Counted from the first letter of the stretch, positions 38,837-64,000 are shown. The stretch: DNA of 64,000 nucleotides from Ascidiella aspersa (GCA_963924565.1 OZ004607.1:9114001-9178000), one strand, 5' to 3'. The notes: a model not told the origin generated them from the sequence alone. Translations and numbers: made by a program.

Positions 38837-41800
38837 TTATTTTTTGGATTCGGGTCTAATCAGGTGCACAGGTGTCGGGAATCCGATTTTTCGTCGGTAG
38901 AAAGCACGGATTTCTAGGTTCATCCAAATTTCGTTGAAGAAAGTGTAGAGAGAGGCGAACAGAGCAGCAGCAACAAAACATGTCTGAAATGAAAATATTT
39001 TTTCGTTTTACTTTAAACTTTAATCGGTATTTAACCAGAAAGGTTACGATAGCTTATTCATAAGGTATCAAGGCTATTTTCTTCAGTTTACGCACCAGAA
39101 GAGCCTGTAGGCTACCGATTTGAAATATCGCGTTTTAGGCTTGTAGATCGGTAAACTCATTACGAATTACAGTCTTTGCGCCTAAACCTAAAGCGTAGCT
39201 GTGTTTCAACCGAATATAAAACCGTTAAAAATCCTTGATTCGGTTGCACCCTAAAAGCACCATTTATTCGGTTATATTTCACTCTTATTTTCGCACTTTT
39301 TTGTGACGCCTGCTGTTATACAAACCTGATATATGACGTCAGGGGCCGTTGTGGTGTAGACCAGAATCGGCAAGGACATGGCGACTGAAATAATATCGAA
39401 AACCGCTCCAAAACCTCCAAGCCAGAGCTGACGCTCGATTCTAAACATAAATATTTAAATTTATGAATATGCAGCTGCTCTTTCATATGTTATCAACACT
39501 ATATGTAGAAGTTGTGACCGGGCAGACCAACTATTAGTGGACAACCATTTACGTAGATTGTTTTCCATGCCAACAGCAATTTAAGTATAAAAAGCAACAA
39601 GACACTTCGATGAGCACCTAGACCAGGGATGGCAATCCTTTTCATTGCGTGGGTTACAAATAAGACATTATTAATGAAAAATACACACGTGGGCCATACA
39701 TTAAATTACATTTTTATGACAATGTGAAACTTGCTGCTTCGTCTACTCTATAAACAACAGTAAGCCTGTTTATATGCACCTTTCTCAGGCAGATTAGATT
39801 AAGGTTCAAGCCGGCTTGAAAAGTAATCCGTTCCAGCGTCTTAATTACATGGCGCGAAATTCAAGCCAGCTTGAGTGTACAAACTGCACTGCTATGCATT
39901 ATTACGTAATATTCCAGTAAACCTCTAACGCACAACCAATTTTTCGGCTTAGGCTACTCCTTGCGGTAGCAATTTATTGCTGCTTGTTCGTTTTTATTAA
40001 CCTAACATTGAAAAAAAAACAAGAATTACTTGAGTTAGGTTTGCCGATTAAGAACGTTTTTGACTGTCTGTATTGTGCTTCAGTTTACCTGGCACACAGA
40101 ATGTAAGTGCAGGAAAGTTAAGCTTGTTTGTGCTGGCCAACGCTATATACAAGGCAAAGTGGACAAAAGAAGGTGATAAGATGTACCAAACATTAATGAA
40201 AACTGTATTTGGCGCTGGCCTAGAATCCTACCACAGCGTTGAGACAATTATTAAAGCAAAGGGTGGACCAACTATTACTATTTAAACCTACCCAAACCCG
40301 CATCCTAACCCAAATAATGTTATATGTTGTGGATTCTAGACCAGCGCCTATGTCACAAATTAGTATCTGATTCTAACTAGTGTATGTAATGTTCTTTCCT
40401 TATGCGCTAAACTTGTTTTGTTTACGACTAGCCGTTCGTGTTACGTCATAATGCCCCAAAAGTGGCGTGATGTTTACTGCGTTAAAGCAGGTCATTCAAC
40501 ATCAAACAATTCCGGCCGTCAGCGAAACGAACAGATTAAGCGGAGAACGGATTGAAAACCACTCCTTTTGTCAGATTAGGAAACGAGAGAAAATTCATTC
40601 CAGCGTCAAAACGAGAGAGAATGAATTAACGAATCAGATTCGAATCCGGCTTAAACGTGCATATAAACGGGCTTAGTGTTGTAATGTTTTCAAATGACTT
40701 GACTTGAGTCATTTGGGCAAAACGACTTGACTTGACTTTAAGTCTTTTGGTCAAATGACTTGTTGAAATGAAGTGTTTTTCTGTATTTTTTTTTCAATAA
40801 AATTGAGCTATTCATCCAAATTTTTGCACATAAAACAATTTGCTTGCTATATGTAGCGTTTTTCTTATTTTTTAGTTCAGGTATTGCTCATAATCGTACG
40901 AGTTTTATAATTCCAATAGTTTGACGTTTTGTGTTTTACGACGAAGACGTGACTTGAAGTTGACTTGCTCTAATTATGACTTGTCTGGGGCTTGACTTGT
41001 TGTTTATTAAAAAAGGCTTGACTTGGACTTAAGTTATTTTACAAATGACTTGACTGGGACTTAAGTCATTTCAAAATGACTTGTTTACAACACTGACAAA
41101 CAATATTATCCTTGGCTGGTACCTGATCCATACGTTTATTGAAACGATTCATTTCAGTAACCGAAATCAGCATTCGCACAAATATTAAAGACCAATAATG
41201 AAATGCATGCTAACCATTAGTGCCTTATTACAAATATTTAGTAATAACATAATTCTTTCCGAAATATTCAGTTATATTTTATTAGGCTATTTTGAAAAGA
41301 CAAGTGGGTCACTGAAAATCTCTAATGGGTCACTCTGTGACCCGCGGGCCATTGGTCCGCAATATTTTACATGGACCTTTATGGTCCCATGAGAAGCTCT
41401 GGATTATACGATAGGAAAGTGGAACTAATAATATAAGTAATATTCCTTATAAAACACGTGCCCTACAATAAACAAACCGTATTGCGTCCTTTGGCTTTAT
41501 CAGCCAGTCGTTTCTGTAAAAACCGCGGCAGTCGCAGGCCAGCAGCATCAGGCTTATGATTGCAACGCACAAGTAGCAAGTCATGGCCACAGCGATCACT
41601 CCAGGTGAGAATAGGTCGGCGCAAACCAGTTGGAACCGGTCGTGGGCGCCGTGCTGACTGTCGTAGAGAAGATAGATGGCGGCAACGTTTGCCGGAGCTA
41701 GAAGCGAATGTCCCCAGCTCATGAGGCTGAAATTCGGTCGTTTTCTGCAACGAAATGGAAATACGTAGAATAAATATCAAAGGTTGCTATTTGACCTTCC

Positions 41801-44800
41801 TTACGACAGTTAGTATTATGCGAGACGGCCGTTCGTTATCTAAAATGTGGGTTGATGCTACGAAAAGCCGTGTTATCGTAAAACCCTATGCAATATATAC
41901 AGCTAAAATATTTTATATGTTAAAACAAGCTTCTGATTGAGCGAAATTTTGCAAACGAATTTGTAACAAAATTCTGCAGATTATAGTTGTAATAGAACAT
42001 ATCTATAGAAACGCACTTAAAAAGTAATATTGTCATCGCTAAAACTTACTTATTGTCTTCCGGGGTGTTGATTTTTACGTAAACGTCAAGAAGGCGAAGA
42101 CATCCACATGTGCAGCCAACCGTGCAAAAGTATACGTACAGAGCCAGGGTAGCCAGGCAGATTATGTCGCTCGATTCCATCAGGAATGAGACCGCAAGGA
42201 CAACGTACCTAAACAGGACTACAAAAAAACTTAGTTAACAAACAACACTTTTCGTTAAATATTAACTTTTTTACTTTTCTATTTCGATCAATAAATGGTA
42301 TAGGCACGAGAGTTTACGTAGTTTGTCTTTGTCATGTTTATAAATTTAAGATCTGATGGATTATAGTGTAGGCCCAACTGTTGACGCTAACAGTGATGCT
42401 TCAACGTTATTGGCCTTTTTTTGTTCGTGTTTTTTGGGGCTGGGTGGTGTTAGAATTATTTTCTTTAAAACTCGATGCTTATTCGCTACGTGGTGGTGGC
42501 GCTATTCCTAGGCCCTATGTTCCTTTTTTTAGTCAAACCTTATTATTGTTCTCTCACTCGCACTGCATGGCACAAAATTTAGCATAATAAAAATTAATAA
42601 AAAAATATTTAACATAATAAAATGAGGATGAAAACACTCTTCAAACGTATACATCGCTCTGTACCTGCGAACAAGGTGTTGAGTGTGATAAAGGTTCGTT
42701 GAATTGGAATCGTGGTCGGATAAAACACGAGAAACGTGGAAAGACCGTAGATGGCAAGGCACGCGTAGCAGGTGTACGTCATCAGAGTTCTATGTAAAAA
42801 GTACGAAATGTCATCGAATTAAACAAAACTTTGGGGAATCTTAAAACAACGATAGAGAATTTTTTATCTTAAGCACCAATTTTTTTAAGATACGAAAAAA
42901 TGAGAAAAATTACCTCCATTATAGAAAGTTTGTAGCCAAATTATTTATTTTACTTCTCCTAATTTCGCATTGTATTTTTAACATTTTACTAAGTGAAAGA
43001 AAAACGAGTAAATTTCACATGCCCAAATCCACATTATCTTACATTAAACTTTATTGAGTTTGCCAACTACAAAAAAATACAAAGCGAAAACCTGAAATCT
43101 GCTGTGATCTGTCGGCGCAAATACTCGTCGTTCTCGTAATCATGACTCAGCAGAGCGAAGGTGGTGAGATGGTTGCAGCGGCAGATCGTCCTCTCCGCAC
43201 GAAGACGCCAAAGAGAACAGCCGTCGTCGTTGAAGAGACCCGAGGTCGACTTGAGGTCAACAAATACGCACTTCGGGTTCTTCGGTTTGCTGAAATAAAC
43301 GGAAATTTGTTTTAATAAAGGTATAGATGTTAGCTTTATAGGGCGATCGCAAAAGCAAGAATCTTGTTCAGAACCAATTTTAACAAATCTAACAATACGA
43401 AACTAATGCAGTCGGCTACCCAACTAAATAAGACGGAGACCAATTTTTAGGTCGTTGTCGTTGGGTTGAGAAACATTTTTGTAAGTATAATCTTTGATAA
43501 AATCGACATAATTTTCAGCACCCTTCCGCAATGACTCATGTCATCTAATTCTAATATATAAAATTGAGTAATTTTATTGGTAGTTCTCGATTTTGTTGAA
43601 CGTTCTTGCTTTTATATATTTATTGATATTGCTGAAAAACCCTGTATGTTGTGTTCCTTACTATAAATTTATTCTGTCGATTGTTGTGGCAAATAATTCT
43701 AGCGCTCAAGCGTGTTTTAGTAAAACATGAAGTCGAATTCAACCGATAAATTGATAAGGCAGCGAACTGGAAACCGTAAAGATGGAATAGCATGTAGTAA
43801 AATATTTACTAACCATGTATAATTGGTGGATAAGTTGTATGACACCCCCTATAAGTGTATTGTTGAATAACCATCTTATTTTAGTTGCGCAAATTGGTGA
43901 CATAAAGGCTGTAGAGTCGAGGCGGACTCGGATTGTTTTTAAGCGACTTCGAGCACTGATCAGCAAAACGTTTTAGGCAAACCCAACAACTCACCTAGCA
44001 GTTAATAGATTTAATGAGAACCAGACGGCACGACAGACCTGCGACAGACGAAATAATATGCCTGGTGTCAACCCGAGTGCAAGTTATGCCACAGTTGTAA
44101 GAAACAACTGGGGATGTCCAGTAATATTGGATCGGTATTAGCCACCATACACCAGGGTGCTATCGGTGCCGATCCAATACTAATTCGATTTAGGCTTTTC
44201 AGCAATGATTTGCGATCTAAACGCAGCCATTTTAACCTTGAAAGGTAAAAGGTTATAGATAACAACTAGATGTTATCAAACTTCGTAACGCACATGCACA
44301 TTTTGGCCAAATAACCTGAAATAACGTTTTATTTTAGGTTTTTTGCTTGTTTAAGAATAGTAGTGTTTTGGAATCGGATGGGATACTTTGTGTCAAAAAA
44401 ATTGGATATAAGATGTTGTGGTATCCGACATCCCTGGAAACATCACAAATAAGATATTACAATATTGTATATAAGCACTCACCGCTTGTGATAAAACGTG
44501 ATGTAGACATGCCCGTTGATCCGATGGGCGGCCTTGCGTCCGTTGCCATGCAACAGCTGGGCGCCTAGCAACGCGCTGTTAAGCTTCCGGCCTTCAAAGC
44601 TCTCTTCCCGAGAGTCCGAGGGGAAGAGCGTGATCGGTAGGGAAGAAAGGATTTCCTCCGGATCGTCGTACTTCACAAAGCTGACGTAGGACTCCTCCTG
44701 GAGGAGGGAAGAGTAGTGGGAGGAAGAGGAGGAGCTAAAGTTGGTACTGGCGTCCTTATCTTCTATGATGTTGTTGTTGTTGTTGATTTCGGAAAAAGCC

Positions 44801-47800
44801 TCAGCAGGGATTTCGATAAAGCTTCCGTCGCGGCTGAAAACATTCAAGGATTGGGTGAATTTTGCAATAAAAATGAGCTTGGATTGAACATAGTATTAAA
44901 AAAACGTTTATAACAAGAGTTCATATAATTTAATCAATATCAAAAAATCAATGCAAATACAGAAGCATTTCTGATCTAAAGTCGTTCTCGATTAGATAAG
45001 CCTACTATTAAATCTCAATTTTCTCTCAGTTAAGTTTTGCCCCAAATCAAAATGTTACCCAATGTTGAAATAGATGTGTGTGTTCTCACTTCAGTTCAAG
45101 TCACTTCAGCTCAGTAGACAACGTACATTTAAATTAACGCCTTGTAACTGATCACAGGAACAACTGTATGCGCTACTCTTAAAACTTTAAACTCCCCATA
45201 CAGTATACAAGCAGACTCGACGGAGTCGGTTTATTTTGCTGGAGCCGGACTCGGGACTCGGGAATCGCGTAAGACCACGTAAGACTACCCGAGTGCTGAA
45301 TACAACGTGCGCATGCGCAGTACGAAATTTCAAAACCGATGGTGCCGCAATCTGTAAGTTGTAAAGGTGGAATAGAATATATAGTTGGATATTTTTCAAT
45401 CATGTGTTGTGGGTGATGAATTATTATATGACATCCCTACGAGTGTATTGCCTGTATATCAACCTTCAAGTTACGTAAATAGGTAAAATACAGGCTGTAC
45501 AGCCAGACTCCAAAAAATCGAACAGTTGGCCGGAGTCGGACTCGGGACTCGGACTCGGGTTATTTTTAACGGACTCCGCAGCCCTGGTTTAATGTACCTC
45601 AAATGTGGGCTGTCGGTGCCCGGGTACCTCACGGCGGATTGCTGGTCGCTGAATGCTTTTAGTGCGAGATGCATCTCTGAACTGAAGCTGGTTTGGTAGG
45701 AATCGAATGAAGCAGGGTCCAAGAGACCGAGGGCACCTCTTGTAGCGTTATCAACGTTGGAGAACATCGTCTGTAGTAAATGAAATCAGATCAGTATTGG
45801 ATTATGGCGGTAAAATAATCATAGTTACTTTACAATACTAAATTGGAAATTCAGGTTGCACTTTTGAACAAAAAAATAGGCTTTGGTACAGCCGTGCGTT
45901 ATAAGGCCAAAACTTAACCGGTGCATAGGAATTAGAAAAATACAGCCAAGTTATATTGCACCACACTAGGTCCTGTTCCTGCTTGTAAAGTCAAGTTACT
46001 ATTCTTGCGGTGAAATATAAGATAATTCATTTAACAAATCAATCTTTTTTCCCCTTCTATCTCTGATCCACATCCACATTGCATTAAATTTGTTTCTGTC
46101 ATTCCAATTACTACCAGCAGATTGAAGTTTAAAACCTGTGACCCTACAGATCTTGTAGCCAGTATCTAAAATATATCGTAAACTTACTCACACAATATAA
46201 TAAATCATAAGACCCGAACTGTATTAGCTTAAGATCTAGTAAAACAAAATACAAACGTTTACCGTCATCATATTAAGCAAAGACGGCACGTCGAAGTCGT
46301 CCCACAAGGGGGCGTACTTAAGCCGCAAGGTGTGCTGTACAAGTGACGTCATCCGATCGAGGTACGTGAACTTTGTGTTGCGCAGGGCGCCTTGGAACGT
46401 AAATGGGTGCCAGGAGAGAAGTTTGGAGAGTATGCCTGAGATACAAGGTTATTGATGGCTATTCTTGTAGTGATTAATTCTGGCAGGCAAATGAGGCTCA
46501 CTGAAATGTTACTTTAATGAATGAGTATATTTTGGTAAATTACTTTTTTCCTGAAATTGAATACAACCAAGTTTCGAGTAGTTGGTTTGCTTGAACGGTG
46601 TCATTCATTACCTATTTTAAACTGCTATGAATATACCAATTACAAATTAATGAAACCCATCAATTTGTTTACAATATATAATATTCTAGGATTAGTTTAT
46701 AGAATTATAATTTTAGCTGTAATAATGTCACCTATTTCAAAGTAAAATTCGATGATAAAACTTCAAACTAAAGAAATCAGAACTTCAGTTAGTTTAAAAT
46801 ATATAACGTACTATAACTATTTATTTTAGACAAAAAAGCATTATTTTTAGTACGTATAACCAAGCGAGTTTGTCAAATTTAGCGTTATTTGTGGACTATA
46901 TGCTTTTGCAATTCGCACGAAACGAGATTATTTTTTAATTTAAAAAAAAACATTTTCAGTAAATTCTACCAAGCATCAATAGTTTTCACGATGCGCATGA
47001 AGGCAGATCGATTGGTTATTTTACAAGCAACAATTACAAACTGTAGGCTACTAAATAGTACAGACCTTGGAGAGCAACTAAATCCCCGGCAGAGTTTAGC
47101 TCTTCTCCCTCGTGATCCGCTGCCAAGAGAAGAAGAAGACGATCAGTTGCTTCCACGAAAGCATTAGGAGAGGCAGAGCTTGCATCCACGAAGTCCGCGA
47201 TCGCCTAGCAACCACAATAAAGCCAAAGTACGACTAGTTTTCCCTGGTGATTTTTAACATTGGTTGTAAGGATGTTTGGTACAATTTAAATTAAACGTTT
47301 GCAAGAGTTATTGAATTGCCGCGTGAAGTCTATTTGCTTTATATAGTTAAGGGGCATGAGTGCTTTAAGGTCTAGTTGAAATAACACTCCAAAAATCAGT
47401 TGTAACTTTCAGTTCAATACAAAGTGAATTATATTAACGAAACATTAAGAATAAGAATAAAATAAAAGAAAGGCTATAGTGCCGTTTTTAACTTGAATTA
47501 CAATTTAACCAATATAACATATTAAACGAAACAAATATAGAACGAATGATTTGCAGAAACCTGAAGAGTTAAATTAAATTTAAAGTAAGAAATAAGATAA
47601 ATTAAATTATAATTTGCAACTATAAAAAAATCATAATGAATGTTAGTTTTGAGGTAGTAAAAATATCAAAGCCCATTCTATAGTAGGCAGCATTTTGAAC
47701 GTTCGTCAACATCGAAAATAAATAAATATATATATACTGGAAACGTTCAAAATAATACCTACTTTAGTATGGTCTTTGGTATTCTTACTAAGCTACAACC

Positions 47801-50800
47801 ACCAACTATTATAGTTCAATGTTAGATCGGTTTAAGCGCTTACCCGAATAGGAGCAACCACGCAATCGCTAAGGTCCTCTTTCATCCACTGCTGATTCTG
47901 AGAGCACTTCCTCCAGACGATCCCTGAGCTTCCGGGAGGACAGCTCTGATTCTGCGTCCTTCCGGAGTGCTCCAGCGTCCACCATATCTTAGTCCTTGCG
48001 CTCCTCTCTCCAGAACAATGAGGAGCGGACCACTCCGAAGACCGGTATCTGGAGCAACAATAAGAGTACAACTTTCGTGGTTTTTGTCGTATGTTTGCAT
48101 TGTTAAACTTGTTCTATAGATCAAAGTGATAACTGTTAGTGCATGTGAAAAGCATGTTAAGTTATAAAGAGCAAAACTAATGGCGATTTGAAGCAACAAG
48201 CAACACGATATGATTGGAAGCTCGATTAATTTGGAAAAGTTGGAAGTACCGAAACCATGGGAGACCTCAAGCACCAGTATACCTACCTGCTTTTACTTTA
48301 CAACATTTTTGGTATATATGACTAACAAGGATTCACTTCAAAGTACGTTCACCACAATGTATTATTGAATAATACATTATTAACCTAATTTATTTAGTTT
48401 TTTTTTATTGAGGTGGGAAATTGTGCAACTAAAAACGTGCATTGGAAGGCATAATTTAAGCATTAAATGCCCAAAAAAATGTTTACAATATTTCCAATCT
48501 TTATGACAAGTTTAAAAAGCACACTTATCAATCGTCGAATTCAAGCCTCAAACTCTGTTTAGCATAAGTACAGACAATATGAATTGTATTTCCGTTTAAA
48601 TTTTCCAAAGTTTGTTAACAACAAATATTTTTGTGCACAAGAAGCAAGTTTATTAAGGGATATATAATATACTATAGGCCTATTTGTTTCGCTAGAGGGT
48701 TAGCCATCCCTACACTAGACAATTAGCTTCTCACCGATCAAGCGGACACTCGTGCAGATCGCAGATCTCTTCTTGAAACGAAGATTCTCTCTCATCTTCT
48801 TCTTCACAAGTCTTCCCGTTTCCCCATGGAGCCGGATCGTCGCAGATCCGGATGCGGAAGCGGACCCCTCGGCCGCAGCTCTGTGAGCAAGGGGACCAAG
48901 GATGCCACGAGCCCCATTTCCCTGGAGGAAAATTAAGAACATACAGTCAGTGTTATAATGCCTTAAGTCATTGACTTGACTTTAATGCACTTAAGTCACT
49001 TTTTCAAATGACTTGACTTGACTTGACTTAAGTCTTTTGGAAAAATGACTTGGGATTAAATTAGGAGTTTTTCGTTTTCACAAGTTTCGCACATTAAACA
49101 GTTTTGTTGCTTTATATTGCGTTTGAGTTAATTTTTAGTTGAATTGTTGCTCATAATCGGAGGAATTTTAATAGTTTAACAGTTTACCATGTCAAAATGA
49201 CTTGTTTAGAACACGGCATACAGTGTCCAGCGTTAATAGCTAGTACTTGGTGTGTGGTGTTGGTCAAATGGCAGTGTTTCCTAAACTTTCAATAAATCTT
49301 CGTTGGAGACCCCTTTGCAGTTTTAAATCATTCGCCGTCTGTTCAAATTTTGTAAGACTAGTGTTATCTGATTCATCTAAAAGCCAACAGCTCTGTAACA
49401 TGTTTTAAGGGTTTAATCGTACTTTCGATTTTCACTTGGGGCATACAGAATACTAGGGATGCAACAGGCAAATTATCTGATTCACTTGTGAATAAAAAAT
49501 TCCCTTGTAAATATTCGTCTAATGGTTGTTCGATTTTACAATTTGTTGGTTGTCGGTTCTCTGTGAATCCTTTGGTGTTTAATGTTGGCTTCTGGTGTTC
49601 GATTTTTATTCTTGTATTTCTTGTTTTATTTCTGGCGTTGCTGCTTACATTAATAACTTTGTATCATGTTACTATACAGAGAAAAAAGTTCACCGTGAAT
49701 CGGACATTCCCGGTTCGGGCACTGAACCGTCTGTTCCTCGCTCTCGGTACAGGGGACTTTCCCGGCAAACTCGTGGTCGACCCAGTGACACCGGCGCACC
49801 CGGGTCCTCACACCCGGGGAATCCCCACATGTGGCCGAGCACTGGGTGAAGAGGGTCCACTTGCCCCAGACCCAATCGCTGGAGCAGGGCTGAAGACCAA
49901 GAAGCCGCTTTTCCTCCGTTTCCTGCGAATTTTGATAAAATCAGGAAAAAAAAAACGGTTGATTTGTTGCTCAAATGCGAACACAATGGCGAGGTAGGAA
50001 TGTCCAATAACATCGGATCGTAGCCGATACCCGATGCCAAGTGACGGTACTCGTGCGATACAGGGGTGAAAACGGTGCCAATTTGATACCAGATTAAAAT
50101 ATAATTTTGAGGCATGATTGTTGAGTCTAACGCATCGATTCTATACTTTAAAAGATAAATTTATCAATAAATATTAGGTTAACTGCTGGGTGTAACTAGA
50201 CTTTTCAAATCTATAAAGCAAAGACCTGGAAAAACTATATTTTAATTTTATCATTATAATGACCTAAGTTGGTATCGGACAAGATCGCGATATTATGTCC
50301 AAAATATTGGGTATCGGTATCGGAATAAAAAGTAAAGTATAGGACATCTCAATAGCAAAGGAAAAAGTCGGTTGTCTCATGATCATTCAAACACTGTCTC
50401 TAACACTTTGGCACATTTTAGTTTATTTAAGTTTAAGGTAACCTCCCTGCTGAAAAACAAAAGTCAGTTTGGCTGAACTCGTTATGTTTAAGCATATATT
50501 ATAATAAGACTTAAATCCATTAAAAATACAGGAATTCCTCACAAAAAAAATCTTGCCTAAGACGAGGTTTAAACTCACGACCTCGGCCATACGGGGACGG
50601 TGAGCTAATCAGACGTTTCGCATCCTGATCGGACATACAACTGGATCACAGTAGGATAATATGTCTTTCATTACACATTCAATTGTCTACTATTGTTTTG
50701 TCAGGCGTGTGCTGCTACACTTAACAGTATGCCCCAAACATGGATCTGATAGGCTAACTGTTTTTTTGTTATACGCCATTAAACAGTCAAAATGCACGAA

Positions 50801-53800: not shown

Positions 53801-56800
53801 GTCGCTATGCTGCGCTCTTGAAATTGAAACCTGCACCGTTGGGTAAGATTGGTTTGTTTGATCGTTTTCTTATACAATGGTTAAAATTGCTGCTGATTTT
53901 TTCAATTTTATAATTGCATTCCTTTGACAGTGTAGAGAAACATGCTAACCTACTTCCCCATTAGCTTTATTTTTCTACACCTGACAGCATTCAAATCCAA
54001 TTACAAAATATACACAACGTTGCCGACTTTAGAGTGATAATTTCCATTTGCTCTATGTTTTCCAAATACTGCTTTTAACTGAAGTTTTGCGTTTTGGAAA
54101 TCTTAAAAAGCTGTGTAATTAGGGTTTATTGGGAATCTGCTAAATTACAGGAAACAGTTAAATGCAATTTTTGTGCAGGATAGACTTCAAAATGTTCACT
54201 CAAATCACATTCCAAAATTAAAAAATACTGTCACCATTTATATATTACGTCGCAATAGTAGTATAAACTGCTAAACATGACTGGCATCTGAAGGCTTTAA
54301 TTGAATAGGAAAGTAACATAACGCTGTAAAGTGTTGTTCAACCATTTTTACGCGGCGACCCAAATGAGAAATTATGGGCCATGTGTTCATATTGCACCTC
54401 AATTATCTCCGATATTGGAGCAATCTTTCCCAGAACCAATCACAATAATGTAACAATGCGAACTACTGTAGTCGGCGACCCAACCCATTTAAACAGCCAC
54501 ACGGCTTTGGGTCGTGACCCATGGGTTGCGAAACGCTGCTGTACAACTTATGCTGCCTTCCAACTAACCACTTAGCGTTTAAATATCGAGACCGCAGCTT
54601 ATAAATACCTTGAATCGATCGGCTTTTTCGGCCGGATCCGGATCCGACCAAGAAACTTGCAATTCTGACTCGCCCTGGGACTCGACTCGCAACTCGTCGA
54701 CAACGAGTAGCGGTGCGGGGACGTCGTACTTGTGGACAGTCTCCGATGCAACGAAATCGGGGTGACCGAGTTTGTACAGTTGAACAGTTGTATGATATAA
54801 GCATCCTATATAGTGGGAAAGAACGCAAATCAAGCAATTTTGAAGACAACTCCCGGATTACAAACTTATATAAAAAATATGATATTGAGCGAGGTGACAG
54901 AAATTTGTCGTTGCTTAAGAAAGAACGATTTTAAAAGGATACGGATTTTTGAAAAGGGCACCCACAATAAAGCTGAACATTGCTTTCAGTTGATTCTACG
55001 CAATTGCAATTCACACAACGAGTCAAATAACAGAATGTGGAGGCGAATTAAAGCACAATAAACAAATCCAGGCGTGAAAGCAGAAAATAGTAAAGTCTCT
55101 GAGAACGGAAGAGATGTAGACTTATCTAACAAATTGCTATCTAAAAATTAAAACAGGTCAAAATGAACAAACAAAAGTGGAAAATGTTGGGGAAATGAAA
55201 AGCAATAATTTTTTTTCTTCAAAAAGTAAATGTTAAATCATTGGATATGGTTTTTTGAAACATGCTTATCATCTAAAAAACATTCCATAAACCAAACAAC
55301 GACTGCACCTTTTACTGCCACCGACATATTGGCGGCCATCTCCTTAACAAAGAGCCTGGTGTGTACGTCACAAAGCCTCGTCACGGTCTGCGCTTCTCGC
55401 GTCGACGCAGCGCTGCAGGCGGCAGTGGAGCGTGACCCCTGGATACTTGCGGTCACTTGGTTGCTGACCACGAACTGGTGGCAGTCGCTGTCCACCTCCC
55501 AGGTGATCTCAACTGATTCGGGGGCGATTCTGTGGGTGAAAATAATTCGGGGTTGTTGGGTTAGATTTGTTTATTAAAGAATTAGATTTTAACGTTACGT
55601 GTTTATAGGTTTTGCAGTCTTTCGAGTCGAGTTAGTTATCGTTGGTAAGCGACTTTAGAAGGGCTAGATTGCAGTTGTTAAATACCAATGTTTGTCTATC
55701 TTTCTCTGAATAATATGGTACTGTATATCCACTACAATGTGAAGTTGGCTGTATACTACCGGAATGTAGCACGCATTGGCGCAATGGCTGTTTCTCGACT
55801 GTACTTGAATAATCATGCTTTGCTTTATTGTTTGCATACTTGAAGTGTGAGCTTACACCAAATGCCATCTAAATAGCTTACGAAATCAGTCGGCCTGATC
55901 AGGATTCACATGCAAGGGAAGCAATGCTAAAAAACAACTAGCATGCGGTGAGTTTGAACTCACGACCCCGGCCTAATAGGGACAGTCGCTCTACCAACTG
56001 AGCTACGCAGGCTTAAGGGACTGATGGTCAAGAAACGACCATGTCACCGCTGCCTACTTCATCATGTTTGTACAATCAATCCCATTTTAAGGAGTTTAAA
56101 CGCCCATATGTTGCAACTTAAGCATTTATATACAACATGTGTATATTTTAGAATTAAACCCCTTTGAAGCCGTTAACCGACGATACCTTCGGAATGGCTT
56201 CCTGGAATCAGTATAGGCAAGGAATTAGCTTATAAATGTCATTTAAAATTAAAGAATTTTATATTAAAAAAGGCAAGGAATAAGCTCATGGATGTAATTT
56301 TCTTATATTAAAAAATACCTTTTAACGGCCAGAGTAAGGCTTCCAGAAAATCCAGTCAAGGTCCGTTGGTATCCACCCGACGAATTCTTTTCTCCAGCCA
56401 CACTGACCAACTCCAGCACGTATTCGGTCAGAGGCTCAAGATCAAGCAGATGGTGATTGGTCACGTGAGCGTCCATTCTGTGCTGTGACGTCACTAACGA
56501 CGATGACTCTGCAAAAATAAGCGTTTTGCAAGCTTGAGCATCGAAGGTCTCTGGCCCTGATATGAATCGGTGAAGATAGGTTGTGAAGATAGGTTGTCGA
56601 ACTTGAGTTTCTCAATTTTCAAGGTGTTTCTAGTTAAAAATACTTGAAAACGGTGTACACAGTATGTTGTTTAAAAGGTTGTTGTTAATTGTTAATTATG
56701 GGCATTTCACACAAGTCGTGAACTGGAAATTTACGGAAAGGAAAACCTTTAATCCTTATGTGGACTTTGTATAAAAAAGGTGTTCCAATTATTACAGTCG

Positions 56801-59800
56801 TAATAAGAATATCAAAGCCCATACAGAAGTAGGTATCATTTTGGACGTTTCGAATAACTCTTTATTCATTGAGAGAAGTCACTGATGGAAGTAAAGAGTT
56901 ATTCGAAACGTCCAAAATGATACCTACTTCTGTATGGGCTTTGATATTCTTATTACGTCTTACTACAACCTCCAACCATTATGCTCCAAAATTATTACAG
57001 TGTTTTCTATTTTCTATTGCAGTCACGAATATAATTATTATCAACAGAAATAGATAGTAATCTTAAACAAGATGTTCACCTTAATATTTGATAAGTTAAT
57101 TTGATAAGGTAACAGCGGTATATTAAAATAGGAGAAGCGTCATTTTTTTACCATTTTGTTAAGTGTACCGTTGTGTGAACCTGGTTTTAACAGCTTTATA
57201 AATTCGTTTGAAACTATCTTTTTAATAAAAAAACCCATAAACTTCGTGGAGAATCATACCCAAACCCAGGTGACGATTTTGATCAAATGTCCAAAGCGAC
57301 CCTCTTACCGCGAATATTAAGAAAAATGGCGTCCAGGTACTTGTAGTTTTCGATGGCCCACTGAACAGATAAGCCGGTGGTGACTTTGGATTGAGTGGTC
57401 AGGTTCCTCAGGGCTACTATAAAAGGAGCTTCTGGCATCACTTGGGAGTGCAGCCGAGCTACTGGACCGTCCAGTCCACGGAACACTGACCGCACTTCGG
57501 CCATATACGGTCGGCCTGGCTCGATTTGGCTGGAAGCATTGCCAAGGCCTGAAAACGGTTATTAAATGTCATTTAATTACTTGGGTACACTATGCACAGA
57601 TCTGCAAAGTAGCTTGTATTGCAAAGTCAAAAAGGTCGAGTAGACGACATCATCTTGTACTACTTGACTTTTTTGGCTTTGGAATTAATTGTCAAGTCAT
57701 GAAATCAATTATTCAATATGTTTGTTTTTTGAACTCAACGAAAATGTATAAGCTGAAAAGGTATTCTATCGGTAAAGTTTGGAAAAAGGGATCAGCCATA
57801 TACAATGTGAGGTTATTACTAAGGACTGAGTCTATAAAGTAAAAAGAAGAGTACCGGTATAGTTACACACTATTGTAAAAAGTATATTACATTTGAAGCA
57901 AAACTTGATTTGCTTGTACCAGTAAAATTAAATAAAGTGAAAACTCACAAAACAAGTTACATGGGAACACTGTACGTTATCTTCAAGAATAAATAACTTT
58001 CAATCGCTTGATTTTGCCTTCCAATTGTTTAAATGTAATTAGACTCTCGATATATTTTTCAATGTTACATCACATCTTATAATTCGTTTATGAAGGTGAG
58101 GTAATGTAGAACCTGCTTGTTCTTTTGAAAAAAACATTCGTGAGTTATTTAGGAAACACTGTTTAAAACAATAAAAAATACGCATTCATATAACTATAAA
58201 AATTTTTTTTTTTTAAATTCCCGGGTCTGGACTTCTAGAGTACCCAAGTTATCCCTGTAAGTACCCCAAAGCTTACCGACTAAATACTCGACGATTGGCG
58301 AACCGCCTTCCACAATGGCTCGGTAGAGCAACGATGGCTGGCTTTCGTTGTTAAAGGTGAACACATCGAGCTTGTATTCGTAAGCGTCTCCCTCCACCGG
58401 TTTGCTCCACTCTAACAAGTCCGTCCCCGGAAGCAATTCGCCTGCCTCTGGTGGAACTGCTGATCTGAAATCGCAATCAACCTCTTTTTGGTTTGGTAGC
58501 AAATACAACTTACATGGCTGGAGCATAATGGGTGGAGGTTGCAGTTCGACATAGATCGAATATCAAAGCTCATGTAGAAGTAAATGGTAGCGTTTCGAGA
58601 ATGTTTTCGAACAAAAAATGTTTAGTCATTTTAAACACCATGAAAAATCAACATAAGTGTAAAAAAATAATACAACGTTCACCAAACGCCACTTCTTTAT
58701 TTATGGACTGTGATATTTTTGTGCTACAAAACTTTAAACACTTTCGGAGAAAAACGACATATTCTTGCAAAGAAACTTTGATTTTTAGGGAAAAAATAAA
58801 GAAAACTTAATTTTTTTTAAAACTTGATTCTGGTTGAATGCGTTTCACGCCTTTTTTACGCTCATTACAGTATAGGTACTGAGAACATTTTTTAAATCAC
58901 ATAAAACAACGAATTCGAACAAAAAAATAATTTGGATAGGGCCTCCAAAACAAGTGTTTTGCAAATCACCAAATATGTTTTGATGGTCTCTGAAATTAAA
59001 TCCAGCAAAACCTAAAAATAATTTAGAAAGCCTAACCTCATCTAAACTAAAATTGACATTTAAAAACGTTATAACCGATGAAACTTACCGCAATAATAAA
59101 ACGGCACTTGATTTATCAGCTGGAGCAGATATAACACAAAAAACGTTATCGAAAAATTTAAAAAAAGAGAAAAATCAATCACTTCAAACATCCATTATCG
59201 ATATGGGCCTTTGGCTTGTGGCGTTTCCTAACACTTACTGAATCGACGCCGGTACACCAGGAGCCGTAACCACAACCCTGGTCACCGTCGTGGCAGGCAG
59301 GTCGGGCAGTAGGATACTTTGGATGGACGCTGTAACGTTGAATGTGTACACCTTGCCGTCCTTTACGCCGAACAACTTCATTACGATCGGATCGTTTTCC
59401 GAACTCGTAAGGTCGATAGTTTGCTGACCGACATCATAAACGCTCGACCTGTTCAAATTAAAGAACAAGATTCAGTGAGTTAAAAGACAGACTTTGTCGC
59501 TTTTAAATTGGGGAAAACTTTTAAACCAGCGCCACTAGTCTTCTACCGGATGTTGTTATTAAACAGGTAATTACTATGCAGTCTTCTACAGCAGTGCTTC
59601 TTAAACTCTTTCAGTTTTGTTCACCCCTAGCATCTATCTTAAGATTTCATTCAACCTTGTCTCATGATATGATAAAACTATCTCGTCTATATATAACAGC
59701 ACAAAATGACTTGGGTTTTTTTTTGTTAAGATCAACTCTAGCTAAGATTTACTAAATTGCCAATCTACAATTTCTCGAGTCAAGAGATATAAAGCTACAA

Positions 59801-62800
59801 AAGCACAAAACACAGTCACCAAATGTTTGTACTTATACACTCAGTGCAAACCAATTCTCTATCACAATCAGCCAAAAAAACACCAAAAAACAACAGTTCA
59901 GTAGTTGATTTACTGCGAGTTGTCATCGATTTCTGATGGTTAACCCTTATTTACCCCTTTTGGTTGGTTTACCCCTGGAAAAATATTATTCACCCTGGGG
60001 TGAACCATTCACCTGTTCAAGAAACACTGTTCTACAGGGTGTTGTTATTAAAGGTAATTCTAAAAGTTCCAACGTCCTAAATTTAAACTTCATTAAAGGA
60101 AAAACTTGTAATGGTTATAGTAACGCATCGGGTTATTTCTACAAATGACATGGCTGGAAAAAAATACCACCCTTAGCGATGTTGGATCCGATACCTGAAC
60201 TTTCATATCGATACCGATTCGATATTTTGACAAACACAGAATTTTTTTATCAAAGACACTTTCGGACACTTTTGAACTGAGTTAAAAATTAACAACTAGC
60301 GTTATCTAGTCGGTCGTTTCTGAGAAATTCCAGAAGATAGGAGAACTACAAACTTGGAAAGGTGGTGTCTTACTGGGCAATTGTCAAAAAAAAAAAAAGA
60401 TTGGACGGGACTTTTGAATAATGGCAAATGACTCATGCTTGGATTAAACTGATTTAAAAAGTCGTTTGCTTTCATTTAGGGAAGTACAATAACTAAAAAA
60501 ATATATATGAAATTAAACTGTTTATAAGCCAAATTTGCGTTGGCAATAAAAAGTTGCATTACCTCAGGTTGTTATATTTTGTTTGATAAATTTAGCGTTC
60601 CAGGTAAACTCATTATGTTGCATCGCAAATCGTGGCTGAACTACCTAGCCTATATCAATTTGGTATGGAATCGGCACAGATACCACCCTGGTACCAGACG
60701 AGTACAAATACTACCACTTGGCATCCGATATTGGCTCCGAACCGATATTATCTTACACTCATTTTGACAATCCTGATACCATTCCTTAATTAACATCATT
60801 GAAAAGAGTTTAATAAGCAGAGAATTTTCTTAACAAATAACGCAACGTTTTAAATCTACTTAAATTGAAACTTACGATCCAGATCTTTGATAGACTGACT
60901 TATACAATATTGTCTCTGCCACCGTCGACAGCTTTGTTGCGTCATAATTGAGGACTGACGTAAGAATAAAATCTTCGTCACTCTTTTCTATTGTTAGAAC
61001 AATCGCAACGGAATATCTGTAAAAGCAAGCATAGGTTTCGCGAATGTGATTATCATACTGTTTATGCAGACTTTGGTCAAAATAATGTTTTTTCTTTAGT
61101 TTAACGTTTTCTTTTTTAAATGCGTTTCTCATTTTTTTAAGTAAAAGCCGTAAAAAATTGTAAAATTCGTATCCACGTACCAAACTTTAAAAGCGGTGCT
61201 AATTTAGTTGTATGATACAAAGTCTGTTCTTAGGTTATCAAAACACCCTGGTTTTTAGTATTGTTTTTAGAATTTATGTCAATCGAATATCCTGCAAAAT
61301 ACGTTTAGATGGATGGCCTAATTACTAACTGGTTGACAGAACTCTGGCACGGTTGTACGTTGTAGAGTTTTTTGAGTTCTCCAACTCCGTTGAAAGATGA
61401 TGCTTCGGAAAGAAGGTTGACGAATGATGGCGACTCTTCCTCATTTAATAAGCAACTGAACTTGGAAGCAATAACCTAAAACATGCACAAAACTACGTTA
61501 TTGGGCCTGTTTAAGTAGTTAGTGTGTCGTGTGGCATCACTTTCCTTTATTTATCACAGTTTTTAAAAGGATTAAATCCTTTATTTTCTCAGTAGCCTCA
61601 AGTATTTAGAACATACTTAAAGCAAACACGTAACAGCCTAAAGTACTAATGTAAAATATTAAAATTTCAGTTTGGTTGTATGCAAAGTCAATATGGTTTG
61701 CTGCTTACTAGAAAATAATCTAGATTATAAAACAAATATCACAAACAAACTTCCGTAGCAATTGGAGTATTACCATAAACATGGCTGTTGGAACTTTATT
61801 GTAATGTAAACATTGCGCTTCTGTAATGGCGCCTATTGATAATTAGGAAATTCAATATTAAGTATATTAAAGAAGGTTAAACATTTATCACTCCTCCGTC
61901 AATTGCTTTTTTAAAGCGTTTGAAATGTTCCGTTTTCAAAACGCCTTGTTTTGCGATTTAAAGCAAAACTTTCCACGATAAAGCAAATAACGGTAGAATA
62001 CCCTGAAAATAAATACTTTTTCACTTCCTAGTTTAAAATTAACTTTGCTGATTTAGCCATGGTGTTGACGGTATTTGGTTTTAGATCGGATCTCGAATAA
62101 TTTTACTCAGAGTACATCGTGTATCAGTTTGGGAATCAAACAAGACCAACAATCGGACACCCCGAGCTAAAACCAACGTCGTTACCAGCCACAAACCAAA
62201 ACAACAAGCGTTACCTGCTGCTGCGACAGCGGTTCAGCGGCGCCGGTGATCGGACCAAGAAGGCCGACGTACTGAAGGTCGAAGGCTGCCGACGTGTTAC
62301 CGCTTCTCCCTTCTTGATCATGTTCTGCCCAGAAAGTCGAACCGTTTCTATGTCTCAGTGTTGGCGCAAAGGCGCGGCCGGACCCGACCGCTACGTGACC
62401 TTTGAACCCGGCCAACGTGCAGGGGGAATTGCCGGACGTTCGGGCCACGGCGGTGCCGTCGACGTAGAGAAGGCACCTGGTGGCGGGACAGAGCGGTGTA
62501 AAAGTGTTCGACTATATTGTCTCGTGAGAAAAAAAAAAAAAAAAAAAATTTAATTGAGAACTAGGTTTGTGAACAGAAAGAAAAAAATTGGTCGAAGGTT
62601 GGTACACTCGTGAATTACAACAATTATTCGACTACTCGAATTGATGCTTTTTAGTTGACTCTTTATTGTTAAAAAATTTGTCATATTGTGTCTCTCATCG
62701 TTAAATTACACATGCGGAAAATGCATTCAAAGTTCTTTTTTGATTTATATTTGAAAAGAATTTTAGAAAAATAAATTGCTTGTGTTTAAAAAATCTAACA

Positions 62801-63490
62801 AGCCCTAATCTGTAAAAAATACCAAACGCACTACTTTTACATGGACTAAAAACATTTGAACTTATACAAACCCTATTATAAAAAAATAAATTTATTATTT
62901 TTTTAAGTAAGCATTTTTTTTCTGTAACAAATTTATTGTGCGTTTCAAATTTCCGAATTATGTGTCAAGGTTTAGAAAATAGTGGAAAGATCAGCTAAAC
63001 CAAGTTTCGATAAAAAAGCGACAGAAGTTAAAAAAAAAACTTTTCTTACCTGGAGTGTTGATCTTGTTCGTCCTGCCACCCCGTTACGGCGCAAACGTGG
63101 CGCCACTGGCCGCCAGTCAACAAGCCTGCATCAAAGGGGGTCGCGGCGCCGTCGGGCGTCAGGAACACCACCGCCTCGCTCCCGGCGCCGCTCTCGGCCA
63201 CGGCCAGCAGGGGGCGCATTCCGTCCTCGGCAAAGTACATCAAGGTTCCGACCTTTTCCGCCGAAATCCACAAACAAAGGGCGGAGATCGCAGTTCGCGT
63301 CAGAGTGACGTAGGAAAGAGTATCGGTCAGGGGGAATTCAAGGGCGCCGGTGTCCATGATTTGCGAGTAGCCGGCCTGGTGTCTGCCAACTGTGTGGGAG
63401 GCCAGGCACACCGCCGTTCCAGCTTCGGTTTCGCTCGTAGATTCGACCATGCAGCTCTGGGAGCCGCGGATCAGAGAGCCGAAGTCGGAC
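38837..63490 (-). CDS. Adhesion GPCR, 5'-partial (pentraxin-like, FN3-like repeats, 6x TSP1, HormR, GAIN/GPS, 7TM)
   Basis: Phase-consistent exons 63490-63050, 62476-62215, 61475-61330, 61016-60876, 59448-59239, 58464-58277, 57548-57309, 56508-56319, 55529-55309, 54805-54609, 53830-53606, 53109-52927, 52274-52167, 51839-51630, 51085-50936, 49922-49694, 48921-48735, 48048-47844, 47204-47066, 46435-46263, 45770-45598, 44833-44483, 43289-43092, 42789-42665, 42218-42050, 41744-41478, 39440-39326, 38983-38837. Motifs: WRHVC; LEPLTEY and LTPATLY; WxxWxxW..CSxSCG..RxRxC; [19 protein letters not shown]; [12 protein letters not shown]; seven hydrophobic segments then [16 protein letters not shown]-stop. 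Confidence 0.88.
40211..40348. mobile_element. GGCGCTGG-TIR MITE with cctaaccc core
   Basis: TIRs ggcgctggcctagaatcc / ggattctagaccagcgcc. Confidence 0.75.
40675..41095. mobile_element. GACTTGACT-repeat hAT-type MITE
   Basis: TIRs tagtgttgtaa / ttacaacactg; many gacttgactt units. Confidence 0.8.
44108..44435. mobile_element. CCGATAC/GTATCGG-repeat hAT-type MITE family
   Basis: Termini gggatgtcc / gacatccc; related copies at about 11640-11715, 49995-50351 and 60174-60788. Confidence 0.6.
45179..45586. mobile_element. GGACTCGG/GGAGTCGG-repeat MITE
   Basis: Repeated ggactcgggactc and ggagtcgg motifs; ends in ccgcagccctg. Confidence 0.6.
48948..49216. mobile_element. GACTTGACT-repeat hAT-type MITE
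   Basis: Termini cagtgttataa / ttagaacacgg; perfect TSD catacagt. Confidence 0.85.
50545..50615 (-). mobile_element. Degenerate tRNA-derived element
   Basis: Minus strand GGCCGAGGTCGTGAGTTTAAACCTC..TTTTTTTT; similar to 55940-56012. Confidence 0.55.
52400..52800. repeat. 25-bp minisatellite, about 16 diverged copies
   Basis: caactt recurs every 25 bp; consensus approximately caactttaccaaacaacattccaac. Confidence 0.85.
54330..54538. mobile_element. Degenerate Charlie-like MITE
   Basis: gtgttgttcaacc..gcgaccca..ggttgcgaaacgctg, resembling the element at 33556. Confidence 0.55.
55940..56012 (-). pseudogene. tRNA-like sequence (pseudo-tRNA or SINE head)
   Basis: GCCTGCG TA GCTC AGTTGGTA GAGC..GTGAG TTCAAA CTCAC CGCATGC: A and B boxes, acceptor, D and T stems present; anticodon arm does not pair; T6 run just downstream. 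Confidence 0.75.
56799..56957. repeat. Perfect 66-bp inverted repeat with 27-nt spacer
   Basis: 56799-56864 is the exact reverse complement of 56892-56957. Confidence 0.93.
59592..60029. mobile_element. Charlie-like hAT MITE
   Basis: TIRs CAGTGCTTCTTAAAC / GTTCAAGAAACACTG; perfect TSD ttctacag. Confidence 0.85.
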
Positions 63491-63687
63491 CTGTGAGATA
63501 AACAAGCGATGACCATTAGGCCGGTGATTCTTGAATGCTTTATTAGCTTGCGGTACACTTAGGTAGCGGCCAAACAAAATTTCAGCTTTCGGTAACCAAT
63601 CTAAAAAACACAGCAATGAGACCTAACTATAGTAAGACAGACGGCTAAACGATTAATTCATTTTATCGCAACATATTGGCTGTACAC

Positions 63688-63983
63688 CAGGGGTTCAATT
63701 TTTTTACCGCGTAACACTAAAATTTGTTTTACTTCGCTTGGGCCTAGAGGGCAAGGCATTTTAGAGATGACGTCACAATACAAATAGATTTTAGAAATCT
63801 GATATTCAGTCCAAAAAATGTAAAAGTGAAATGAAGCCTAAATGTTCATTAAGTGCAAAAACGTTTCATTTATAAATAAACCCTTTTCTTAAAAAAAATG
63901 ATTACTTTTCAAATATACACTGATATTTAAATTAGGCCTTCACTGACCCCAAGGGGCCTTGGACCCCAGTTTAAGAACCCCTG
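63688..63983. mobile_element. Charlie-like hAT MITE
   Basis: TIRs CAGGGGTTC / GAACCCCTG; perfect TSD ctgtacac. Confidence 0.88.
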
Positions 63984-64000
63984 CTGTACACGATATTATA

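Follow-up and report, generated by a model that had tools for sequence, protein, structure and literature searches.

What kind of protein is encoded by the long minus-strand series of open reading frames (ORFs) in a 64 kb stretch of the Ascidiella aspersa genome (OZ004607.1:9114001-9178000, hereafter the window; assembly of 308.6 Mb in 75 contigs)? An earlier note had read them as a single G-protein-coupled receptor of the adhesion type (aGPCR) carrying a pentraxin-like module, FN3-like and TSP1 repeats, HormR and GAIN domains and seven transmembrane (TM) segments. Our analysis, in which all homology searches were run on single exons or ORFs, one at a time, points in a similar direction: the locus probably contains one large aGPCR-type gene with a mosaic ectodomain, a GAIN domain and seven membrane passes. 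From the outside in, the predicted product would consist of probably five C-type lectin domains, a Cys-rich module, a concanavalin A (ConA)-like domain resembling pentraxins, about four FN3-like units, six TSP1 repeats, HormR, a GAIN domain whose GPS contains HL|T, seven hydrophobic helices, and a tail some 30 residues long. The locus stays a predicted gene model.

To rebuild the gene, splice-site candidates were collected for each exon, homology decided between alternative acceptors and donors, and a script tested borders, stops, and phase in each exon and, for every split codon, its three bases. On the minus strand, from position 63490 down to 38837, 26 exons were rebuilt within the window (5,299 nt, about 1,765 codons; table 1). 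All of them have AG/GT borders, zero internal stops, and compatible phases, none of the split codons forms a stop, and the chain terminates in a stop codon at 38839-38837. The single open frame claimed for this region was therefore recovered, with 26 verified exons in the window; the claimed number of 28 was not reproduced there. When two exons past the window end (U1 and U2) are added, the chain has 28 exons with about 1,900 codons in all, likewise AG/GT-bordered, stop-free, and phase-consistent. The exon E18a was included as the only phase-compatible connection between E17 and E18b that retains the coding-like start of E18b. An extra exon in the ORF 39705-39502 was rejected (GC content at third codon positions [GC3] of 0.38, coding score of -0.49, not needed by phase), and the ORFs 40227-40051 and 40372-40223 were rejected on similar grounds. 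The PTX2-E3 intron of 2.7 kb contains no additional conserved exon.

Three features suggest that this chain is more than a chance arrangement. The GC content of the exons is 0.48–0.64 versus about 0.37 in the region, neighboring exons carry split domains in register, and six exon blocks are conserved in order in a relative (see below).

In the central part of the ectodomain, the six predicted TSP1 repeats were borne out by Pfam exon by exon, TSP_1 being detected in six successive exon ORFs with E values from 9.2e-12 to 7.1e-4. Three of these matches are above the cut-off, and the other three are just below it because the repeats are cut by introns; adjacent exons share successive repeats. The following exon (E16) matches the Pfam HRM model, in agreement with the HormR domain expected at this place, and its best match in PDB is the HormR domain of CELSR1 (E value = 0.012).

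The GPS exon (E20) was recognized by Pfam with 44.3 bits and matched more than 15 solved aGPCRs in PDB, the best being ADGRG6 (E value = 3.4e-7) and ADGRD1 (5.8e-7), followed by ADGRG3. ADGRB2 (3e-3) and BAI3 (0.012) were ranked behind ADGRG6, D1, G3, L3, G2, and F1, and the GPS exon resembles ADGRG6 and ADGRD1 more closely than ADGRB. Its motif CRCNHL|TTFALLS aligns with CNHLTHFGILM of ADGRG6 and CTHLTNFAILM of ADGRD1, and the HL|T site lies about 20 residues before the first hydrophobic segment. These matches support the presence of a GAIN/GPS unit ahead of the membrane domain. The exons 5' of the GPS, which would form the remainder of a GAIN region of about 320 residues (E18a counted), had no family match. 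The GAIN fold is poorly conserved, and lack of a family match is usual.

If the gene works as its layout suggests, glycan or matrix ligands would be bound by the ectodomain, GAIN would cleave itself at HL|T, and the exposed TTFALLS peptide might, like its equivalents in other aGPCRs, activate the membrane domain as a tethered agonist. Roles in immunity, engulfment, or mechanosensation are purely speculative.

Does the C-terminal part agree with this assignment? Seven hydrophobic segments (Kyte-Doolittle) follow the GPS and are distributed over E21, E22, E23, E25, and E26. The loop lengths are similar to those of class B receptors, a Cys is located at the outer end of segment 3 and another in the second outer loop, and segment 4 contains SWG. 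The composition of E21–E23 is coding-like (GC3 of 0.58–0.65). Characteristic signatures of aGPCRs have been described in TM3 (LHxxxLxxFxW), TM4 (GxGxP), and TM7 (FxxxxxxQG), including W3.50, P4.50, and G7.50, each of which is more than 95% conserved (PMC8584163). In the predicted protein, segment 3 has no Trp, segment 4 reads SWGHS, and segment 7 (LFASLYTFF) has Y and T at the places of Q and G. Thus, the topology of an aGPCR is present and the sequence hallmarks are not.

Several observations weigh against the assignment of this gene to aGPCRs or against its extent. All three signatures are absent. Pfam found no 7tm_2 match on any single exon, the two membrane exons compared with PDB (E22 and E23) had no match, hhalign gave none for the membrane exons, and a hidden Markov model (HMM) built from 19 7tm_2 ORFs of the same genome had no match among all ORFs of at least 15 amino acids on both strands between 34 and 44 kb; exon-wise searches have little power for a divergent seven-TM (7TM) domain when exons are 40–90 residues long. 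The locus is also not among the 150 listed of the 164 7tm_2 matches in the genome. E25 and E26 show weak coding composition, positive only locally, and two GPS positions that have Trp in ADGRG6 are V and F here. At the other end, the lectin exons are linked to the gene by phases alone. Finally, in the one RNA run considered (X3, about 6% of which was read), depth was zero on all exons within the 6 kb stretch covered, which includes part of E3, PTX2, PTX1, U1, and the donor of U2.

The seven TM segments of the earlier note are thus retained as seven hydrophobic segments after the GPS; homology to 7tm_2 was not detectable exon by exon. GPCR signaling by the predicted product is doubtful, and classical G-protein signaling is the weakest step of the scheme outlined above because the membrane domain lacks W3.50, P4.50, and G7.50. 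We consider it unlikely that the frame is intact and the product is no longer G-protein-coupled, in which case the seven passes would only anchor a large adhesion or recognition ectodomain with a GAIN domain in the membrane, or act for it as a non-canonical signaling module. The missing signatures and homology matches fit such a product, as do the very short tail and the fact that a genome-wide search found no paralog of E23. On the other hand, the loop lengths, the Cys pair, the SWG in segment 4, and the intact HL|T followed by a hydrophobic peptide resembling a Stachel look like a constrained aGPCR layout, and a divergent 7TM domain is hard to detect exon by exon. The aGPCRs of Ciona are likewise hard to place, 24 of 30 having been left unclassified (PMC2396169). 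A further idea, which we think quite unlikely, is that the receptor couples three classes of innate-recognition modules, lectin, pentraxin-like, and TSP1, via GAIN to a seven-pass domain without the class B2 signature residues and would represent a new divergent branch of adhesion/secretin 7TM domains with its own mode of activation or coupling.

The reading as one aGPCR-type gene can be compared with two metagenome contigs (L027 and L028), which share 97% identity in the region of the matched protein. On one strand of L028, counterparts of U1, PTX, E3, E4, and E5 occur in the same order with 24–40% amino-acid identity, and a counterpart of E6 was seen by eye in the ORF list only. The intron sequence is not conserved between the window and L028. 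Positions 660-1150 of L028, upstream of its U1-like exon, contain a tandem peptide-like repeat (KMMGNTTQPP/KNDGQYNATT) that is open in three forward frames.

It might be asked whether the gene is silent or decaying, that is, a young pseudogene or a gene with a degenerating 3' part whose open frame is a remnant. We regard this as very unlikely. About 1,900 codons in 28 exons are free of stops and frame breaks, all splice sites are intact, and the exons are conserved against diverged introns in the relative; these facts stand against the zero RNA depth on three exons, the near-background composition of the last two exons, and a 7TM region without the residues that are more than 95% conserved. 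A single run read at about 6% does not show silence. The junctions that were to be confirmed by RNA sequencing found no support in X3, whose reads in the 6 kb stretch fall on two repeats only, and the single-gene reading consequently rests on shared exons, phases, and the syntenic relative. The two repeats both have very high DNA word depth. The positions concerned are 63680-63985, in the U1-PTX1 intron, and about 59600-60200; one of the two is an interspersed repeat with at least 40 copies in the genome at 72–84% identity.

Three window exons (E6, E8, and E9) match complementary halves of the Pfam fn3 model. In L028, the E5-like exon matches fn3 (E value = 0.0044) and the E6-like exon matches FN3_DSCAM (0.0014). 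A profile made of E5 and its orthologs (A2) had as its six best PDB matches only fibronectin FN3 fragments (E values of 0.07–0.44), aligned across a domain boundary. No exon reaches the fn3 cut-off of 25 bits because an intron splits every FN3-like unit. These convergent partial matches support the presence of about four FN3-like units and a shorter beta-rich piece (E3); the several FN3-like repeats proposed earlier are kept in this form, although all matches are weak and none is above the Pfam cut-off.

E9 holds both the F-G part of the last FN3-like unit and the first strand of TSP1-1, and continues in phase 0 into CSASCG of E10. The FN3 block is therefore tied to the TSP1 block, which supports the prediction that the FN3 part and the part from TSP1 to 7TM belong to one gene. 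Two separate genes, an upstream lectin/pentraxin-like/FN3 protein and a BAI-like TSP1-HormR-GAIN-7TM receptor, have very little chance of being the correct description: no transcript evidence joins the two parts, TSP1-HormR-GAIN-7TM is already a complete architecture in ADGRB and the PTX2-E3 intron is 2.7 kb long, but E9 spans the border, the 496 bp E9-E10 intron has no ORF with a start codon and signal peptide, all phases are compatible, the FN3 block has no terminal exon or stop, and the order from PTX to FN3 is conserved in L028.

What is the domain encoded by PTX1 and PTX2 in this single gene? It contains the LYVDG motif, which had been taken as a sign of a pentraxin/LamG-like module. Its two halves form one uninterrupted ORF in P0001 and L028, and the junction codon agrees with the homolog (...DFARCVLYVDG). 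PTX1 matched no Pfam family, and there was no match to the Pentaxin model (PF00354) at the locus; PTX1 alone had nothing significant in PDB. An Ig domain in PTX1 is not claimed; all that was seen was a faint Ig-like similarity between ROBO2 and the first 40 residues of this exon. Among 1.84 billion representative proteins, P0001, a 344-amino-acid ORF called on metagenome contigs, was the sole true relative (E value = 7e-15, 29% identity). The other hits of this search (P0002-P0008) were bacterial collagen-flanked repeat proteins and were discarded as low-complexity noise. P0001 itself matches Laminin_G_3 only (E value = 1.5e-5; 25.6 bits, slightly below the cut-off of 27.6), and its nearest Atlas clusters are all Laminin_G_3. 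An AlphaFold model of P0001 from a six-row alignment had a predicted local distance difference test score of 34, which is too low to use.

We then compared a profile (A1) consisting of P0001, its cluster mates, and both PTX exons of the window as separate rows with PDB. There were exactly two matches, NPTX1 (6ype; E value = 4e-5) and NPTX2 (2.7e-3). The alignment covers the C..W...W.H.C core, in which the two disulfide cysteines coincide with those of NPTX1. The classical pentraxin signature is HxCx[ST]Wx[ST], together with a conserved Cys pair. The corresponding stretch reads HVCAVTGW in the domain studied here, which differs from this signature and also has an insertion before the AEHDQEG stretch. 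Sequence comparison thus describes it as a divergent ConA-like domain of the Laminin_G_3/pentraxin clan, whose nearest solved relatives are the neuronal pentraxins, and not as a member of the pentraxin family. The module proposed in the earlier note accordingly stands as ConA-like, by its profile similarity to NPTX1 and NPTX2, and does not stand as a pentraxin by the Pfam model or the signature. The genome also has ordinary pentraxins: the Pentaxin model matched 21 further sites across it, of which 16 are above the Pfam cut-off, with canonical exon clusters at C2:7.85-7.87 Mb, C2:32.19-32.20 Mb, C5:25.84-25.97 Mb, and C5:29.10-29.11 Mb.

A paralog search recovered no second genomic copy of the PTX-like exon. 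Together with its one true relative among the representative proteins, this supports the suggestion that the gene is lineage-restricted, in line with the lineage-specific receptor envisaged earlier.

How far does the gene extend upstream? The acceptor of PTX1 requires a further exon, and the earlier placement of the N-terminus past the window is supported by U1, U2, and probable lectin exons. U1 and U2 lie 0.26–1.6 kb past the window end and form a Cys-rich stretch of about 130 residues, which has no relative in Pfam or PDB. A direct junction of U2 to PTX1 via a weak donor was dropped after the conserved exon U1 had been found. Further upstream on the same strand, there are ten exons of five C-type lectin domains, mostly of phase 1-1, some of which match Lectin_C (table 1). 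Stop-free and phase-consistent chains connect all ten exons to U2, U1, and PTX1, several splice choices being acceptable, and the five lectin domains are probably part of the same gene. A 139-amino-acid ORF about 13 kb past the window end may be a further N-terminal module; its coding score is very strong (55), it looks beta-rich (...GDVPVGETYIGDVSVLELRG...), and neither Pfam nor PDB gave a family for it. The full model would comprise at least about 2,500 residues. A long coiled-coil gene of many exons with E/K/Q/L heptads (L032/L033) begins on the plus strand about 19.7 kb past the window end, and up to about 83.7 kb (extended coordinates) no opposite-strand gene was seen, which would place the 5' end roughly 12–20 kb past the window.

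Which known receptors does the predicted protein resemble? It shares with ADGRB1-3 (BAI1-3) a run of TSP1 repeats followed by HormR, GAIN/GPS, and seven passes. BAI receptors have four or five TSP1 repeats, whereas six are present here, along with additional N-terminal FN3-like, pentraxin-like, Cys-rich, and probably C-type lectin modules. The tail of about 30 residues contrasts with the long cytoplasmic tail of ADGRB, the GPS is closer to ADGRG6/ADGRD1, and the 7TM signatures are absent. The ADGRB-like stalk noted before is thus found in the order of TSP1, HormR, and GAIN, but the GPS exon and the tail do not match orthology to ADGRB. ADGRG6 (GPR126) and ADGRD1/2 likewise combine a pentraxin-type domain with GAIN, and in ADGRG6 with HormR, and it was ADGRG6 and ADGRD1 that the GPS exon matched best in PDB. 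The pentraxin-like domain studied here differs by its lack of the Pentaxin match and signature, TSP1 and FN3 arrays are not in those receptors, and no CUB or SEA domain was found in the gene.

Shuffled domains are well known from invertebrate aGPCRs, and the predicted gene appears to be a new combination on that pattern. Amphioxus aGPCRs carry C-type lectin, Kringle, SRCR, and other domains (PMC2246102), those of a sponge carry fn3, HRM, Ig, and SRCR (PMC4302439), and novel invertebrate aGPCR subfamilies have been described (PMC6900090). FN3 domains in aGPCRs are thus not unprecedented, contrary to what had been assumed, while the exact combination of lectin, pentraxin-like, FN3, six TSP1, and HormR was not found in the aGPCR literature surveyed. 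Like these receptors, the predicted gene would join a lineage-specific ectodomain made of phase 1-1 exon modules to a GAIN-7TM body.

Dense tandem runs of 7tm_2 matches, of which the genome has at least 164, are present at C6:6.69-7.03 Mb, C8:22.69-22.82 Mb, and C5:2.13-2.21 Mb, which indicates large putative class B/adhesion GPCR arrays. The gene described here differs from arrayed aGPCRs in being single-copy, outside the arrays, and in having a 7TM region far more divergent than theirs.

If expressed, the product would be among the most module-rich aGPCR ectodomains described, with about 17 recognizable domains of five kinds. It would also be a further clear product of phase 1-1 exon shuffling, in a genome where the GAIN-7TM body seems to serve as a general-purpose scaffold. 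With an intact GPS and a Stachel-like peptide before seven helices that lack W3.50, P4.50, and G7.50, the gene might serve as a natural experiment on the residues that a tethered agonist requires.

Table 1. Exons of the predicted gene and upstream features. Positions refer to the window, except for features past its end, which are given in L003 and L004.
Feature	Coordinates	Strand	Content	Support
L004 ORF	L004 3090-3506	-	Possible N-terminal module
Lectin match	L004 2013-2204	-	C-type lectin	Lectin_C E 3.4e-4
Lectin match	L004 501-725	-	C-type lectin	Lectin_C above cut-off
Lectin match	L003 9270-9545	-	C-type lectin	Lectin_C above cut-off
Lectin match	L003 4269-4745	-	C-type lectin	Lectin_C above cut-off
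U2	L003 2604-2361	-	Cys-rich exon	Strong splice sites and phases link to U1
U1	L003 1404-1257	-	Cys-rich exon	37% identity in L028
PTX1	63050..63490	-	Short Cys-containing lead-in and first two thirds of ConA-like/pentraxin-like domain (ALCLWIS...)	AG/GT, phase; P0001 match
PTX2	62186..62476	-	Remainder of ConA-like domain (CLLYVDG...AEHDQEG...FDLQYVG)	Aligns to P0001 and L028
E3	59239..59448	-	Beta-rich (KVYTFNVTA), FN3-like second half and linker	40% identity to L028 7904-8053; phase
E4	58277..58464	-	First part of FN3-like domain	Conserved in L028 8466-8561; phase
E5	57309..57548	-	End of one FN3 and start of next (PEAPFIV...LSVQW)	35% identity to L028 9188-9424
E6	56319..56508	-	FN3 second half; alternative acceptor 56556	Pfam fn3 E 0.15, profile positions 41-72
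E7	55309..55529	-	FN3-like module (SVEITWEV...)	Coding score 0.68, GC3 0.73, phase; no Pfam family
E8	54609..54805	-	Linker and first half of last FN3 (ELQVSWSDP)	Pfam fn3 E 0.048, profile positions 5-34
E9	53606..53830	-	Second half of last FN3 and first strand of TSP1-1 (SSWGVFEK)	Pfam fn3 E 0.033, profile positions 44-79
E10	52927..53109	-	TSP1-1 body and TSP1-2 start	Pfam TSP_1 E 3.4e-4
E11	52167..52274	-	TSP1-2 body	Pfam TSP_1 E 2.9e-4
E12	51630..51839	-	TSP1-2 end and TSP1-3	Pfam TSP_1 E 2.5e-6, 28 bits, above cut-off
E13	50936..51085	-	TSP1-4	Pfam TSP_1 E 7.1e-4
E14	49694..49889	-	TSP1-5; alternative acceptor 49922	Pfam TSP_1 E 1.6e-6, 28.6 bits
E15	48735..48921	-	TSP1-6	Pfam TSP_1 E 9.2e-12, 45.4 bits
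E16	47844..48048	-	HormR/HRM domain	Pfam HRM E 2.8e-4, 21.6 bits (cut-off 26.2)
E17	47066..47204	-	Putative GAIN start, helical part	Phase, coding score; no family match
E18a	46263..46435	-	Putative GAIN helical part; alternative acceptor 46390	Phase; GC3 0.67
E18b	45598..45770	-	Putative GAIN	Phase; coding score 0.34
E19	44483..44833	-	Putative GAIN beta part, low-complexity insert (NNNNN...SSSSSS)	Phase, GC3 0.72; no PDB match
E20	43092..43289	-	GPS with CRCNHL|TTFALLS (putative tethered agonist) and linker to TM1	Pfam GPS E 2.6e-11
E21	42665..42789	-	Hydrophobic segment 1 and first part of segment 2	Hydropathy, GC3 0.63, phase
E22	42050..42218	-	Remainder of segment 2 and segment 3, Cys at outer end	Hydropathy, coding score 0.36; no PDB/HMM match
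E23	41478..41744	-	Segment 4 (SWGHSLL), Cys loop, segment 5	Hydropathy, coding score 0.38; single copy; no PDB match
E25	39326..39440	-	Segment 6	Phase fits E23 and E26; local coding score 14.1, whole-ORF composition weak
E26	38837..38983	-	Segment 7, tail of about 30 residues, stop codon	Terminal stop; local coding score 11.2

Downstream of the last exon, the next gene on the same strand is marked by a coding signal at 35350, where an ORF at 35255-35350 (minus strand) resembles, by eye, an exon of an Sm-core protein of the SmD3 type.

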